Notes: generated by a model from the letters alone, not told the origin. Shown: positions 56,230-64,000, counted from the first letter of the stretch. The stretch is DNA of 64,000 nucleotides from Macrostomum hystrix (GCA_950097015.1 CATNEN010000035.1:496001-560000); one strand, 5' to 3'. Made by a program: numbers and translations.

Positions 56230-56400
56230 GAGTGAGGTGGCTATCTACGCGGGGCAGGGAGTGAGGTGGCTGTCTACACGGGGTAGGGAGTGAGGTGGCT
56301 GTCTACACGGGCCGTAAATAAGGCGGCTTTCTATGCAGGCAGGGAGTGAGGTGGCGGTCTTGGCGGGGCAGGTGGGAGTGAGGTGGCTATCTAGGCTGGC
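56230..56400 (+). repeat. Short degenerate repeat with GGGAGTGAGGTGGCT core
   Basis: About 5 diverged units. Confidence 0.6.
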
Positions 56401-56608
56401 AGGGAATGTTTGGCTTTCTAGGCGGCGAGAAGTGAGTGACTGTCTAACGAGACAAAGCGGTAAGTTTAAGAGTGTTTAGGTAAATGTTCACTGGGAAATA
56501 TTTTGAGAAGGTTTAGATTAATGTGTAGCTTCGTGAACGGTGAGATATTAATTTAGGCGTCAATTGGAGTTGTCCAAAAAGTTCTCCAATAAAAGTCGTC
56601 GGGAATTA

Positions 56609-59600
56609 TCAAAATAATGTCGCTGCCTCCTCGCTCATCGCAGCCCGCATTTCGTCATTGTCAACGGCGCGAGAAAACAATCGACGACTCTCTTCGCCTC
56701 GACCGGAGGTCTCGTCGACAACTGAGTTGCTGGCCAGCTGCATCAGCCACATTGGGCGCTCGGAGGCTGTGCCGCTGTCGGCGCAGCTGCAGGCCTGAGG
56801 TGAGGCGCAGCGGCCCCACTGAGGAGAAGTCGGCTGCGGAGCCGCCTGGCGCATCCAGAGCTCCCGCTGATCGGCGCTGAGGCCGCCGCTCTCGCCAGAC
56901 GGCAGGCTTCGCAGAGGACGGTAGAAAAACGCTCCGCTGCGCTCCGGACTGCCAGTGACGACGCCGGCGCCGATGGCGGAGGCGGCGGCCGCGGCGGCTG
57001 CCGCGTGCGTCGGCATGTACTCGCGGGTTGGCAGAGCCGGGCTGAGTCGCTGGGTGGTCAGAGACGACGCTGCGTAGGGCGGCATCGGCGGCGGCGTCGG
57101 CGGAGTCGCCTCGACGATGAACAGGTCGTGCTCTACGTCAGTTCCGACTGTGCGACGATGTCGATGAAGATTCGAACCACCGACCTGCACGCTCTGGTTG
57201 GAGTCATTAAAGTGAAACTATTTTTGCTAATCGTCCAGTTTTCTTTCCTTGCGTTTTCCACAGCACACAGCGTGAAACAATAATAATAATTGCCGGAGGG
57301 CTGCGGGCAATGGCACATCATTTGGTGACACTAGACCCGCAGCCAGCGAGGAGGCAATTCTGCCCATTTCGCTGACTCCTGAGCACACACGCACACAGAT
57401 ACCCTTCGCAGGCACACACTCACACAGGTGTGTACATCTACCCTGAATTTCTCATCGTCAGCAGTGTACACTCTCACTGTGCATCGGAGGCTGGCCCTCA
57501 AGGGCGTAAATTGCACCACAAGCCCCCAAGCCTTCTCTCCGCGGCTGCGCCCCAAATGAATGTGGCCTCGCCGCGGAATCGAACTTAAGTACCTTGGTGC
57601 GAGAGGCAAACGCGTTAACCGCTCTGCCACCGACCCCCAGGAGTCAGTGGAATGGCACCGATATTAGCTCGTATAACCGCACCACCCTACTTAGAGTAGT
57701 GTCTGTAAGACTCAAACGCATAGATATTATAATCGATGAAAATCTAAAGCTTGCCTGGGACCGCTCGTTCTCTCGTTTGGCGCGCCTCCAGAAATCGAAG
57801 TCCCTCCGGCGCTGTCTGAAATGTCAGAGCAGCTCTGGAGAAGGAACTGCTCAAAATTGGATAATTTTAATGGCCAAATTACCTCGATAGGTACCAGGAT
57901 ATTAGCATGATGAGCATGAACATGGTGAATACGAGGCCGATGCCCGTCACCGTCAGGATTCGATCAGTTCGGTGAAAGCAGTCTGAAAATGGAGCAGATT
58001 TTCAAATAGCGAAGCTATTTTTGTTTATGAAAATTTTTTATATTTGTTTGTATCCATCTCTAAACGTTTTTCATCTCCTTTCGTTTCCATATATCAATCC
58101 GTCCCATCTATCTCTATTCGTTTCTATCTATCTCTATCCATTTGTATATATCTTTATCCGTTTCTATCTATCTCTATCCATTTGTATATATATTTATCCG
58201 TTTCCATCTATCTCTATCCGTTTCTATCTATCTCTATCCATTTTTATATATCTTTATCCGTTTCTATCTATCTCTATCCATTTTTATATATCTTTATCCG
58301 TTTCTATCTATCTCTATCCATTTGTATATATATTTATCCGTTTCATTCTATCTCTATCCGTTTCCATCTATCTCTATCCGTTTCTATCTATCTCTATCCA
58401 TTTGTATATATCTCTATCCGTTTCTATCTATCTCTATCCGTTTCCATCTGTCTCTATCCGTTTCTATCTATCTCTATCCGTTTCCATCTATCTCTATCTG
58501 TTTCCATCTGTCTCTATCCGTTTCTATCTATCTCTATCCGTTTCCATCTATCTCTATCCGTTTCTATCTATCTCTATCTGTTTCTATCCATCTCTATCCG
58601 TTTCTATTCATCTCTATCTGTTTCTATCCATCTCTATCCGTTTCTATCCATCTCTATCTGTTTCTATCCATCTCTATCCGTTTCTATCTATCTCTGTTTG
58701 TTTTTACACTTATCTGTTTGTTTCTATTCCAATTTTCTGTCTCTATTTACCTCTGTTCGTGCAAAAATAAATCACGATGGTCGGCCTGAACTAAAATTCG
58801 CTACCTATACTTCAAACTCACCCAGCACTTTACCCTTGCAGGTTTCGCTGTAGTTTTGAAACGGCGCGAAATTCTTCTCGCACCGGTCGCCATAGAAGGG
58901 ATGTGAGCAGCTGATCAGAGTGGATTGGAGATGAGAGGTTGGGGGGTAGAATTTAATACAGGAAATGTAGCACACTGTCTCGCTTTTGCCGACCTCCCTG
59001 CGGCCAAGTTAGTGACCCACACACTCCGGCTCAAAAAATTAGCTAATTAGGTGGAAGAAAAGATCAGGTAAAAAAACTGGAATTAGAGATAGGTTTTTTC
59101 GCCTTCTTTAACAGAAGTAAACGCATACGAAAGCTAGGCATTTGTGGTGCGAGAGAGGCGAGGTCAAGTCACCAGAGAGCAAGGTAAGACGATATGGCTG
59201 AAGAATTAGACAATGAGATCGTTGAATTTAAAACCAATCAACAGTTAGGTTTGTCTAATTGAAGTTGGCAAGAACTTACTTTAGTTGTTTTTGTGTTGTC
59301 CTCTTATGGACGAGGCAATTTTTTCGATTGATTCAGTGAGTGAGGTGGCAGTTTAACTGGGCAGAAGGTGTGATTGGTGTCTGTCTTTCATGGAGTGAGG
59401 TGGCTGTTTAACTGGGCAGGGGGTAAGGTGGGCGCCTACATTTTAAGGAGTGAGGTGGCTGTTTATATGGGCAGAGGGTGTGATTGGTGTCTATCTTTCA
59501 TGGAGTGAGGCGGCTGTTTAACTGGGCAGAGGGTGTGATTGGTGTCTATCTTTCATGGAGTAAGGTGGCTGTTTAACTGGGCAGGGGGTAAGGTGGGCGC

Positions 59601-61589
59601 CTACATTTTAAGGAGTGAGGTGGCTGTTTATATGGGCAGGGGGTGAGGTGGGCGCCTACATTTATTTCATGGAGTGAGGTGGCTGTTTAACTGGGCAGGG
59701 GGTGTGATTGGTGTCTATCTTTCATGGAGTGAGGTGGCTGTTTAACTGGGCAGGGGGTGTGATTGATGTCTATCTTTCATGGAGTGAGGTGGCTGTTTAA
59801 CTGGGCAGGGGGTGTGATTGATGTCTATCTTTCATGGAGTGAGGTGGCTGTTTAACTGGGCAGGGGGTGTGATTGGTGTCTATCTTTCATGGAGTGAGGT
59901 GTCTGTTCAACTGGGCAGGGAGTGAGTTGGATGACAACAGACAAAAGTGGAAAAAACTTAAATAATGAAAACTATAATGAGGAAGAGAAGGCAGTGGAAT
60001 AAAATAAATTAAGAAATTTAAGTAAAAAATGAGTGCTCAGTATGGAAAAGGAGAATCGAACGAAAACATTATGGAAAGAGATAAACATAAAGGAATGAAA
60101 GTGATGAGAAGGAATAAGTGGCTGACGGAAAGCTAATTTCGATTAAAAATCAATCAATTCTTCCTCAAAGACAAATATGCGGAAGAAAACAGTGATGAAA
60201 GAGTTCTCGGTTGTTGGGAATGTCAGCTGCAGCTGACATTCCACTCCCGCAAGTAGCTCTGCTTTTGACAAGACACTAACTGAAATCATTAGCCTCTCAA
60301 TCCTCGAATCTTTCTAAAAAAAATTTCTACGATTGTCAGGATTCGAAACTCACACCTTTTTTGGTGTAGAAAGGAGTTTAGCCAATCATTTGGAAAGTAA
60401 AGCGTTGTAAAACTTCTGGGTTAATTAGAGATGGTTCGTAGCTTCAATAAAATAACTTCTATTTAGTTACGAGCGTATTTTAAAGGCAAAAGCTGTGATG
60501 ATTCAGCAGCGCAGGTCTGCACGCTTTGTTCGCGTAAAACAAAAGAACTTTGGGCCTGATGGAGGCACATAAATAGAACTGTTTAGCCGCATGGAGAAAC
60601 TCCATAGTGAGGATATCAAAATTTCACCGTTTTTTGTGAATTGCTGTATTTGCAGATAAGATGATTGGATAGACAAGTGGACAGACAGTGGACAGACAAG
60701 TCGACAGACAGTGGACAGACAAGTGGACAGACAGTGGACAGACAAGTCGACAGACAGTGGACAGACAAGTGGACAGATAAATGGACAGATAATTGAACAG
60801 ACATGTGGACAGACAAGAGGACAGAAAGTGAACAGACAAGTCGACAGACAAGAGGACAGAAAGTGAACAGACAAGTGGACAGATAATTGAACAGACATGT
60901 GGACAGATAAGTGGACAGACAAGTGGACAGATAAGTGGGCAGACAAGTGGACAGATAAGTGGACAGATAAGTGGACAGATAAGTGGACAGATAAGTGGAT
61001 GGCCAGATTGGTCAACCCAAAAGTGGACCTGATTCAGATTTCAAAGCGAAGCATCACTAAGCCCATAATTGAGTATTTTAATGAGTTTATAGTTTCCAGG
61101 AAAGCAAAGCTAAAGAAAGTTGTCAGAAAACCAGCATCAACAAAACCTGTTCTGCTCTCTCTGCAGCAGCAATCGGGGAGGGAGGGGAGGGTAGAATTTT
61201 AATTAATCTGCCCGGACTGCAAGAGCGAAGCGAGACAAAAAATTGACCCCGATCTAGTCTTGTGTGCCCCCCTCCCCCCGGCTGAGCAGCTAGGGGCTCC
61301 CGAAAGGTTGGAAGCTTGACACGCACTAGCCTGCAGAAGTGCAGGTCAAGATTAAATAACTAGAAATCAATGCAAGCAGGTGGACAGACTCACTTGCAGA
61401 CGAAGCTGTTGATGTCCTGTGCGCTTCTCGAGCAGGTGCCATTGTTCAGACAGTACACGGACGGGCAAGAGTCTGCAACAAAACTTTGCTTGCAATACAA
61501 AAAAACAAACTGCAATTATCACCTTTGAGACTTACCAAGACGAGCTGGGCCCACTGTTGTTGCTGGACCTGGCGTTGATTGCGGTCTCA
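56609..61589 (-). CDS. Membrane-anchored EGF-family growth factor precursor (ErbB/EGFR-ligand, neuregulin/TGF-alpha-like); 5' exons unresolved
   Basis: Exons (minus): 61589-61536, 61472-61394, 58910-58834, 57982-57883, 57815-57755 (GC donor), 57193 (or 57217)-56609. Phases 1,2,1,2,0 all match. The translation reads ...RLDSCPSVYCLNNGTCSRSAQDINSFVCNCSHPFYGDRCEKNF...RILTVTGIGLVFTMFMLIMLISWYLSRQRRRDFDFWRR..., i.e. a six-Cys EGF domain, a TM helix, a basic stop-transfer segment and a low-complexity tail ending ATLF. Confidence 0.85.
57279..57636 (-). mobile_element. tRNA-derived SINE, copy 2, in the last intron of the EGF-ligand gene
   Basis: Same head (GGTGGCAGAGCGGTTAACGCG...GTTCGATTCC), body and (ATT)n tail as 32651-33017, with scattered substitutions. 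No clear TSD seen. Confidence 0.85.
58100..58720. repeat. 20-bp minisatellite (TCTCTATCCGTTTCTATCTA) in an EGF-gene intron
   Basis: About 30 units. Confidence 0.9.
59335..59925 (+). repeat. About 55-bp minisatellite (GGAGTGAGGTGGCTGTTTAACTGGGCAGGGGGTGTGATTG...) in an EGF-gene intron
   Basis: About 10 units. Confidence 0.85.
60670..61000. repeat. 12-bp minisatellite (GGACAGA[C/T]AAGT)
   Basis: Directly visible. Confidence 0.85.
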
Positions 61590-61639
61590 CTAAAATTTCC
61601 GATTAGCAGAAGTCGACAATAAAGTTAGGGGGGCAAGGG

Positions 61640-62980
61640 TCAGAGAATGGAGTGAGGTTGGGCAGGGTCAGAGAATGGAGTGATGTTGGGCAGGGCAGGG
61701 TCAGGGAATGGAGTGAGGTTGGGCAGGGTCAGAGAATGGAGTGATGTTGGGCAGGGTCAGAGAATGGAGTGATGTTGGGCAGGGCAGGGTCAGGGAATGG
61801 AGTGAGGTTGGGCAGGGTCAGGGAATGGAGCGAGGCGGGGCAGGGTCAGAGAATGGAGTGATGTTGAGCAGGGTCAGGGAATGGAGTGATGTTGGGCAGG
61901 GCAGGGTCAGGGAATGGAGTGAGGTTGGGCAGGGTCAGGGAATGGAGCGAGGCGGGGCAGGGTCAGAGAATGGAGTGATGTTGGGCAGGGTCAGGGAATG
62001 GAGTGATGTTGGGCAGTGTCAGAGAATGGAGTGATGTTGGGCAGGGTCAGGGAATGGAGCGAAGCCGGGCAGGGTCAGAGAATGGAGTGATGTTGGGCAG
62101 GGCAGGGTCAGGGAATGGAGTGAGGTTGGGCAGGGTCAGGGAATGGAGTGAGGTTGGGCAGGGTCAGGGAATGGAGTGATGTTGGGCAGTGTCAGAGAAT
62201 GGAGTGATGTTGGGCAGGGTCAGGGAATGGAGTGATGTTGGGCAGTGTCAGAGAATGGAGTGATGTTGGGCAGGGTCAGGGAATGGAGCGAGGCGGGGCA
62301 GGGTCAGAGAATGGAGTGATGTTGGGCAGGGTCAGGGAATGGAGTGATGTTGGGCAGTGTCAGAGAATGGAGTGATGTTGGGCAGGGTCAGGGAATGGAG
62401 CGAGGCGGGGCAGGGTCAGAGAATGGAGTGATGTTGGGCAGGGTCAGGGAATGGAGTGATGTTGGGCAGTGTCAGAGAATGGAGTGATGTTGGGCAGGGT
62501 CAGGGAATGGAGCGAAGCCGGGCAGGGTCAGAGAATGGAGTGATGTTGGGCAGGGCAGGGTCAGGGAATGGAGTGAGGTTGGGCAGGGTCAGGGAATGGA
62601 GTGAGGTTGGGCAGGGTCAGGGAATGGAGTGAGGTTGGGCAGGGTCAGGGAATGGAGTGAGGTTGGGCAGGGTCAGGGAATGGAGTGAGGTTGGGCAGGG
62701 TCAGGGAATGGAGCGAGGCGGGGCAGGGTAGAGAATGGAGTGATGTTGGGCAGGGCAGGGTCAGGGAATGGAGTGATGTTGGGCAGGGTCAGGGAATGGA
62801 GCGAGGCGGGGCAGGGTCAGGGAATGGAGTGATGTTGGGCGGGGTCAGAGAATGGAGTGATGTTGGGCGGGGTCAGAGAATGGAGTGAGGTTGGGCAGGG
62901 TCAGGGAATGGAGCGAGGCGGGGCAGGGTCAGAGAATGGAGTGATGTTGGGCGGGGTCAGAGAATGGAGTGAGGTGGGTC
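61640..62980 (+). repeat. 27/32-bp G-rich minisatellite (GGAATGGAGTGA[G/T]GTTGGGCAGGGTCA)
   Basis: About 48 units. Confidence 0.9.
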
Positions 62981-64000
62981 ATTTCTGTGATGATTGTCAT
63001 TGTGCGGGATACAATTTGTATATTTCCAATTCGCAGTGAACAGTTTTTGTTCTCTAGAATGAAAAAGTATGGAATACAAATACTTCAAGCTGAGAAGGTC
63101 TGGGCATCGAACAGACGACTGTCGGCATTTCTTAGTCTCAGGTAAAAAATTAGTTCATCACATATTGACGCAGCAAAGCTTTCTATCTTCCTTCCGAAAG
63201 TGGCCAACTATGGTTAGAGGCGGATTAGGCTTTGAATCTCCGAGCGTGCTGGGTAGGCAGTGCGCTCTGGAGAGGATATCAGATGCACAGAATTTACTCA
63301 GCGCAGGATGCAGGGGTTGTGGGACTGCATGAAACTTCGATTCCACCTTGCCCACTCTCGCCCTGCCTCTACACTGGGCGGCCCTCTCACACACTGAGCC
63401 GGACGTGGAGACAGGAGGTGGAAAGGCGAAGTTCAACTGCTGCTCATCTTGCACTCTCAACTTTTGTCGGCTTCATCCGCAGGGATATCATCATTGGGTA
63501 AAGGGGGAGATTTATCCCCCAACGAGGAAATCCTTTTCCCTCCTTCCATCCCGTGTTTTACTGTGGGGAAGCTTTCCCAGCTGTGAGCACTGCATGCTGG
63601 AGCTTTTGTTCGATTCTCGCCTATGCGAGGCGCAAAGTTTTCTTCAGTGTATTCCCTGCTGTTAGAAGCAGAGCCAGTGCCATTCTGTTTGCCGGGCGTG
63701 ACTACAAGTGGCCACCTGATTTTGCCGAGAAAGGTTTTTTTGTTCGCTCGCTCTCTTATTGTCACCTACTCACTCCAGTCAATTCTACTCAATTGGAGTT
63801 TTTAAACTTGAGTCAAACCGCGCTTAGGCGTTTTGAGAAGTATTTGAGCAGATCAATTTTTGTGGAAAAACAATTTCTATCTTTCTCACTAGACAGTCAT
63901 GAGGGACAGCACAGCAGAAGAAGAAGAACAAGAGGGACATGGAGAAAGAGTGAGTGCAACAGGCAAATGAGGAAGTGGAGTCAGGTGAAATCCAACACTT

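Follow-up and report, generated by a model that had tools for sequence, protein, structure and literature searches.

A probable neuregulin-type EGFR-family pro-ligand homologue assembled from small exons in the flatworm Macrostomum hystrix

In planarians, EGFR signalling controls regeneration and the differentiation of gut, excretory and neural tissues, and Macrostomum is a flatworm model in which transgenesis is available. Stein & Staros characterised ErbB ligands by an intron boundary that divides the EGF module's fourth cysteine from its fifth (Cys4 and Cys5) and by an EGF module adjoining the transmembrane (TM) segment, noting also a conserved Arg before Cys6 (PMC1618406). Barberán, Martín-Durán & Cebrià 2016 defined the neuregulin (NRG)-type EGFR ligand as one joining an EGF domain to an I-set immunoglobulin (Ig) domain and a TM segment, and this kind of ligand has thus been catalogued in silico in flatworms since 2016 (PMC4914847). 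Theirs is the only work in the searchable literature that connects Macrostomum with neuregulin, and it reports one NRG-type ligand for M. lignano, of another subtype than that described here. We report gene A, a minus-strand gene of M. hystrix (contig C35), the 3' two-thirds of which lies inside a window of 64,000 nucleotides (GCA_950097015.1 CATNEN010000035.1:496001-560000; positions are counted from its first base and continue beyond base 64000). An earlier note, made from the window sequence alone, had proposed a hidden EGFR/ErbB-ligand gene of five short exons at 56609-61589. We conclude that gene A is probably an NRG-type EGFR-family pro-ligand homologue, the Macrostomum counterpart of NRG-2 from the polyclad Prostheceraeus vittatus.

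Gene A is predicted to consist of nine exons, or eight if exon x4 is skipped, and to encode a type I membrane protein whose parts run from a short N-terminus through an I-set Ig domain, a linker, an EGF domain, a stalk, a TM segment and a basic block to a cytoplasmic tail. The gene was handled exon by exon; protein length and phases were obtained by arithmetic and the joined architecture was read from the single exons, which are as follows (L002 position + 61000 = window numbering; the Pfam I-set cut-off is 23.7 bits):

L002 7242-7143, start exon; its ATG lies 9 nt after an in-frame TGA, and it ends in phase 1, fitting the Ig exon
L002 6667-6478 (window numbering 67667-67478), Ig exon 1; Pfam I-set positions 8-54, 31.0 bits
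L002 3474-3362 (window numbering 64474-64362), Ig exon 2; Pfam I-set positions 56-88, 33.2 bits
61536..61589, minus strand, x4, candidate spacer exon of 54 nt encoding a Ser/Thr/Pro-rich Ig-EGF linker; unverified, possibly optional
61394..61472, minus strand, x5, EGF exon N; Cys1-Cys4, C-x4-C-x5-C-x11-C, ending 2 bases into an Asn codon
58822..58910, minus strand, x6, EGF exon C; Cys5-Cys6 (F-Y-G-D-R-C), an N-x-S/T sequon, the first stalk Cys and KGKVL
57883..57982, minus strand, x7, juxtamembrane/TM exon; D-C-F-H-R-T-D-R, then a 23-residue helix ending ..ISWYLS
57755..57815, minus strand, x8, basic stop-transfer exon; R-QRRRDFDFWRRAKRENERSQ, with a GC donor
56609..57193, minus strand, x9, last exon; 194-aa cytoplasmic tail plus stop, the frame ending ..EEAATLF

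The exon lengths (100, 190, 113, 54, 79, 89, 100, 61 and 585 nt) sum to 1371 nt, that is, 456 codons plus a stop, giving a product of ~456 aa, or 438 aa without the 54-nt exon.

Each exon proposed on the minus strand of 56400-61800 was translated, and the peptides agree with those of the earlier note: a S/T/P-rich 17-mer from 61589-61536, the EGF peptides SCPSVYCLNNGTCSRSAQDINSFVC and then CSHPFYGDRCEKNFAPFQNYSETCK, the CFHRTDR peptide leading into a hydrophobic helix, a basic block, and an open frame of 193 aa with the end ..EEAATLF. The short exons, joining in phase as EGF, TM, basic stop-transfer block and tail, are real, being kept by three paralogues, and translation likewise bears out the EGF end F-Y-G-D-R-C and the Cys1-Cys2 spacing of 4. 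Other parts of the model had to be revised. The gene is not confined to 56609-61589, as had been proposed, since three more coding exons lie upstream, 0.4-4.2 kb beyond base 64000. The CxxC described in the stalk (TCKDCFH) proved to be an artefact of a donor mis-set at 58834: the 12 nt past this position encode G-K-V-L and are kept in four paralogues with synonymous changes (ggt/ggc, aaa/aag, gtg/gtt), followed by G|GTGAG. Because KGKVL and its donor are conserved in four paralogues, and P0057 (a M. lignano gene model described below) reads ..CRGKVLDCFH.., the EGF-C exon ends at 58822 and the true stalk is T-C-K-G-K-V-L-D-C, a C-x6-C arrangement.

The 54-nt exon at 61589-61536 is flanked by good splice signals (an AG acceptor and a GTAAGT donor) and its phase is compatible, but it has no counterpart in paralogues B, C24 and C39 or in P0057. 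Its phase is 1-1, so that the frame is kept with or without it. Relatives do possess a spacer at its place, with a length of 21 aa in P0057 and of ~40 aa in NRG-2 from P. vittatus; x4 is a plausible, possibly optional exon. The x8 donor of gene A is of the GC type (CAG|GCAAGC); the exon ends at the same codon, after the 20th, in all close paralogues, with a GT donor by sequence in B and read-through pointing to GT in C24 and C39. An alternative GT donor for x8 (phase 1, with an acceptor inside the last exon) was rejected, as it would remove the conserved R-T-V of RTVGTDVE. For x9, we favour the acceptor at 57195-57194 over a second one 9 nt downstream, also in phase, because S-V-Q-V-G then aligns with the conserved C-V-Q-[VA]-G of the paralogues.

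Genome searches took in the 220-Mb, 42-contig assembly. When the tail served as query in a six-frame search, one further locus came up, on contig C3; the TM exon matched C35, C3, C24 and C39 (four loci) at 88-100% identity and two distant loci at 41-45% (on C35, ~77 kb upstream of gene A, and on C3 at 5.74 Mb); we refer to the close paralogues as B (contig C3), C24 and C39, and to the distant ones as C35b and C3b. Exon-by-exon tblastn and tblastx comparisons indicated that each close paralogue holds the same exon series in the same order and, from the flanking bases, that intron positions and phases are identical across gene A, B, C24 and C39. The acceptor before EGF exon N is AG|AC or AG|AG in A, B and C24, and in C39 it lies apparently one codon further upstream; the remaining junctions read TGC AA|GTGAG after Cys4, AG|C TGC before Cys5, CTG G|GTGAG after KGKVL and AG|AC or AG|AT before the TM exon. 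Nei-Gojobori counts, summed over four gap-free exon blocks (151 codons), gave saturated pS values of 0.58-0.79 and pN values of 0.14-0.18 for the close paralogues, pN falling to 0.06-0.11 in the TM and basic exons alone. As judged from these sequences, the close paralogues are old duplicates under strong purifying selection, not chance open reading frames (ORFs) or pseudogenes, and the exons are far beyond chance because three paralogues keep each of them with the same boundaries at saturated synonymous divergence. Ig, EGF and TM exons occur in the same order and in compatible phase at all six loci (gene A, three close and two distant paralogues), and the genome holds six Ig-EGF-TM genes in two subfamilies. 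On each of the contigs C35 and C3 a close paralogue occurs together with a distant one, a hint that an ancient tandem pair underwent duplication later on, and the distant genes (C35:~630-634 kb, 77 kb upstream of gene A on the same strand, and C3:~5.74 Mb) match the published 'M. lignano NRG'.

The earlier note had anticipated an Ig exon. When the 27 kb past base 64000 were compared with the C3 locus, two exons stood out as strongly conserved; both match Pfam I-set above the cut-off, and together they make one intron-split Ig domain. With the EGF domain and the TM segment, in compatible phases, this gives gene A the combination that defines NRG-type ligands. The start exon shares M-[RK]-L-D-x-R-L-x-P with paralogue D and D/E-S-[QE]-F-V-H-I-[FV]-W with all paralogues; it contains no stretch resembling a classical signal peptide, its sole hydrophobic run being the nine-residue F-V-H-I-F-W-N-L-L, and Pfam returned no family for it.

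Both genomic features of ErbB ligands are present in the EGF region. The intron between Cys4 and Cys5, which the earlier note had taken as a hallmark of these ligands in agreement with the published criterion (PMC1618406), falls 2 bases after Cys4 (TGC AA|GTGAG ... AG|C TGC) in A, B, C24, C39, C35b and C3b, the split codon being Asn in the four close paralogues, and the stalk between Cys6 and the beginning of the hydrophobic helix is 27 residues long. The Arg before Cys6, part of the F-Y-G-D-R-C end that the note had cited as its other hallmark, likewise agrees with Stein & Staros (PMC1618406) and holds in the four close paralogues (FYGDRC in A, YQGERC in B, FHGDRC in C24 and YAGVRC in C39); the distant C35b and C3b lack it. 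EGF exon N gave a partial Pfam EGF match (15.6 bits, profile positions 1-22); B, C24 and C39 all conserve this exon, its AA|GTGAG donor included. At 61432-61449 of the window, the Cys2-Cys3 loop ends G-[ST]-C and fits C2-x4-[ST]-C3 in all six paralogues, and an Asn two residues before [ST] produces an N-glycosylation sequon in gene A and most paralogues, though not in C3b (M-N-G-G-T-C).

The stalk carries one N-x-[ST] sequon and a cysteine pair, C-x6-C just outside the membrane, all kept in the four close paralogues. Nowhere is the protein more conserved than in the juxtamembrane/TM/basic stretch (88-100% identity at saturated dS): the TM exon is 88-91% and the basic exon 89-94% identical to the three paralogues, and the TM exon is 100% identical to the M. 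lignano orthologue. Searches of PDB and Pfam with this exon returned no match. Its motifs [KD]R[VIL][LI]T..GI (start) and [AS]W[YF]..R (end) also occur in published NRG-type ligands: [KD]R[VIL][LI]T..G is found in human NRG1/2 and in amphioxus, Saccoglossus, Lineus and oyster NRGs, Owenia NRG starts with [KD]R[VI]IT without the Gly, and the amphioxus TM segment ends W-Y-x-S-R-x-Q-R-R (PMC4914847 supplement). The tail shows the conserved motifs RTVGTDVEHDL, REY.P, FFYRPLRSLPSGESG and a C-terminal T-L-F, together with a YxxΦ-like F-Y-R-P-L motif; a PPxY motif was considered and dropped, the sequence being P-P-Y and not P-P-x-Y. The C-termini end ..EEAATLF, ..NESSMF and ..EETSFF, so that [ST]-x-F after acidic residues is conserved in three of the four close paralogues, which favours the earlier suggestion that ATLF may serve as a PDZ-type motif; in the fourth, a dispersed repeat apparently breaks up the tail. 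Queried with the 202-aa open frame of the tail (the 194-aa tail plus 8 residues read from the intron), a word-index homologue search found nothing.

Ig exon 1, turned into a profile and run against 1.84 billion proteins, matched mostly giant multi-Ig proteins, and only two single-domain matches were useful. Among the matches was P0057 (UniProt A0A1I8GW14), the closest public protein, a 274-aa M. lignano protein that UniProt names only 'Ig-like domain-containing protein'. It is a partial gene model, the orthologue of paralogue D, 75-100% identical exon by exon, and it joins start exon, Ig domain, spacer, EGF domain and TM segment in one product across the junctions proposed for gene A; in it, Pfam scores an Ig domain at 56-59 bits and, below threshold, an EGF domain at 17 bits. 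At residues 168-192 the model has lost EGF Cys1 (..AIL-PAFYC.., against S-C-P-A-F-Y-C here) and it stops at the end of the TM exon, probably reflecting a mis-set acceptor and a truncated model. A word-index search with its EGF-TM region retrieved only P0057 itself. In the ESM Atlas, whole P0057 had pro-neuregulin-1/2 at ranks 1-4 of the named clusters (0.87-0.84; 176 shared features for the first), with a Vein cluster and neuregulin-2 among its structural neighbours. The EGF-TM part was nearest to NRG4 (0.91, 170 shared features; structural TM-score 0.51/0.54), its other neighbours including gurken-like proteins, probetacellulin, tomoregulin and an epigen/epiregulin-like cluster.

Taken together, the Stein & Staros features, the NRG-type architecture and the motif-level agreement of the TM segment support an ErbB-ligand-type reading of gene A, in line with the core proposal of the earlier note, an unannotated gene of this type built from small exons; its product is predicted to act as a ligand. 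Several observations weigh against that reading. Canonical ErbB-ligand spacing is C-x7-C-x4-5-C-x10-13-C-x-C-x8-C, and gene A has C-x4-C-x5-C-x11-C-x-C-x8-C, its first loop being 3 residues short; the shortened loop is shared by B, C24, C39 and P. vittatus NRG-2, and a Cys1-Cys2 spacing of 4 resembles that of generic Notch-type EGF repeats. The O-fucosylation consensus C2-x4-[ST]-C3 is typical of such generic repeats, the C2-x4-T-C3 loop of gene A fits it, and we know of no such pattern in vertebrate ErbB ligands. Searches with half of the domain do not discriminate between the EGFs of ligands and those of generic kind: in the PDB sequence search, the EGF-N half matched factor IX and mouse EGF equally (E ~0.5) and the EGF-C exon had no match, Pfam returning no family for the latter. 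The Pfam search suggested in the earlier note, done exon by exon, recovered the I-set and part of the EGF domain and no family for the EGF-C, tail and start exons; the tail (191 aa) matched neither Pfam Neuregulin PF02158 nor, with E values up to 10, any other family. The Atlas scores serve as leads, the query having been a paralogue's orthologue and not gene A, and for the x3-x4-x5 joins and the GC donor of x8 the evidence consists of phase and paralogue comparison. Functional work on this flatworm subtype was not found in the searchable literature.

Alternatively, gene A could encode a surface protein of Ig-EGF-TM design other than an EGFR ligand, namely an adhesion- or receptor-like molecule signalling via its conserved tail and PDZ-type C-terminus, with the EGF domain as a structural or glycan-bearing module. 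Such a protein would account for a C-x4-C first loop and a C2-x4-T-C3 pattern of the generic kind, for conservation being strongest in the TM segment, basic block and tail motifs rather than in the EGF domain, for a stalk with an extra Cys pair that could block shedding, and for half-EGF searches without a ligand-specific match. We consider it unlikely, since gene A combines both genomic ligand features with the Arg before Cys6, its TM motifs recur in bilaterian NRGs, its overall likeness is to P. vittatus NRG-2, classed as NRG-type by its authors, the EGF-TM part of P0057 is nearest to NRG4 and other ErbB ligands, and the sister paralogues C35b and C3b have canonical ligand spacing (C-x7-C-x5-C-x10-C-x-C-x8-C, with the same Cys4/Cys5 intron). 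A variant with the EGF domain as one of many tandem repeats in a non-ligand receptor, which the earlier note had named as an outcome that would contradict it, is disfavoured because the upstream ~23 kb past the window end, scanned by regex, yielded no additional EGF repeats.

A narrower model would be a TGF-alpha/Spitz-like ligand with a single EGF domain, limited to 61589-56609 and preceded by a signal-peptide exon just upstream, without an Ig domain. The in-window exons do encode EGF, TM and tail only, and an internal promoter could give an Ig-less isoform, as in vertebrate NRG1; yet upstream of the four close and both distant paralogues the Ig exons recur, conserved, in the same order and in compatible phase, P0057 joins Ig to EGF-TM, and the stretch from the Ig exons to the EGF exon showed no conserved alternative first exon, all of which makes this model highly improbable. 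A chance ORF pattern or a decaying pseudogene, to which the repeat-rich surroundings, the very small exons, the GC donor and the one unsupported exon might point, is practically incompatible with a pN/pS ratio far below 1 at saturated pS and with intact frames and a conservation of splice sites that extends over four loci and a second species. Returning to an NRG-type pro-ligand, we regard it as doubtful, though worth stating, that the close paralogues form a Macrostomum-expanded 'NRG-2-type' subfamily acting mainly as membrane-tethered, two-way-signalling ligands rather than as shed growth factors; the idea arises because the lack of a signal peptide, the short EGF loop, the disulfide-capable stalk, the TM/basic block and the PDZ-type C-terminus occur together.

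Beyond gene structure, domains, purifying selection and family resemblance, we infer a possible mode of action for an NRG-type product of gene A. The precursor would be inserted so that the Ig and EGF domains face the extracellular side; the latter could engage one of the many EGFR-type receptors of this genome either tethered (juxtacrine) or after cleavage of the stalk, the Ig domain might modulate presentation, and the TM/basic block and tail motifs (YxxΦ-like FYRPL, PDZ-type C-terminus) may govern trafficking, processing or back-signalling. That the product activates EGFR as a shed factor is an expectation we lean towards only slightly. Candidate receptors exist in the genome: dozens of open frames, some of them 1100-1600 aa long, contain Recep_L_domain and GF_recep_IV modules. 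These modules are expanded at C9:1.03-1.09 Mb, C1:24.5-27.4 Mb, C38:13.99 Mb and C1:22.19 Mb, with a tandem array of ~1100-aa frames on C9 and dozens of ~585-aa frames on C1; their number is far above that of the EGFRs reported for M. lignano (8), and a large share may represent receptor-L-domain proteins that lack a kinase.

New here are the checked gene model, the set of six genes in two subfamilies and the conserved stalk, TM and C-terminal features. With the gene model and the six-gene family, RNAi, in situ hybridisation and the pairing of ligands with receptors gain concrete targets, and the stalk cysteines, TM block and C-terminal motif bear on shedding versus tethered signalling; a tethered two-way ligand, if that is what the close paralogues encode, could regulate stem cells or regeneration.

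The introns of gene A are rich in repeats. Three in-window introns (x6/x7, x5/x6 and x3/x4) contain minisatellites at 58106-58695, 59338-59930, 60666-60999 and 61631-62972, with periods of 20, 55 (also 279), 12 and 28 nt and 84-87% match; the paralogue introns hold unrelated arrays. A dispersed SINE-like repeat of ~300 nt lies at window ~57295-57640 (intron x8/x9), in which ARAGORN found no tRNA. The same repeat occurs at C3:10318277-10318545, at the C39 locus past the last exon and at 83834-84020 in window numbering, ~22 kb upstream of gene A, copies in or near several paralogues showing 70-93% identity at the translated level.

Among known ligands, vertebrate neuregulin-1 type I and neuregulin-2 share with gene A the order Ig, spacer, EGF, short stalk, TM and long tail, an intron within the EGF domain and the TM start [KD]R[VI]LT[IV].GI. 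NRG1 type I, as gene A, has an N-terminus without a classical signal peptide, and beta-type NRG1 EGF domains end F-x-G-D-R-C; the NRG-1 printed in the Barberán supplement instead reads F-T-G-A-R-C. Unlike gene A, the vertebrate proteins have a Cys1-Cys2 spacing of 7 rather than 4, no extra stalk cysteine pair and a tail that constitutes Pfam PF02158, and the protein of gene A is much shorter. Drosophila Vein and C. elegans SISS-1 also show the Ig plus EGF ligand design. Vein is secreted, its sequence ending soon past the EGF domain without a TM segment, whereas the TM segment and tail of gene A are highly conserved. A Cys4/Cys5 splice site is present in Vein as well (PMC1618406).

Within flatworms, the published 'M. 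lignano NRG' (Barberán 2016) resembles gene A in its Ig-EGF-TM organization, its Cys4/Cys5 intron and its ..SWYL[AS] TM end, but belongs to a different subfamily, with 41-45% identity in the TM exon, a signal peptide, an N-terminal extension, C-x7-C and no stalk cysteines. P. vittatus NRG-2 (PMC4914847 supplement) was compared, as were the other NRG sequences, by eye at the level of motifs on machine-read text. It differs from gene A in stalk Cys spacing (x5 versus x6), in Cys2-Cys3 spacing (x4 versus x5) and in a longer tail whose C-terminus lacks [ST]-x-F. Like gene A, it has no signal peptide, one Ig domain, a Ser/Thr/Pro-rich spacer, a C-x4-C first EGF loop, a stalk cysteine pair, the block DR.LT..GIGL...ISW[YF].[AS]RQRR and the tail motifs RTVG.DV and ..PLRS.PSGES.

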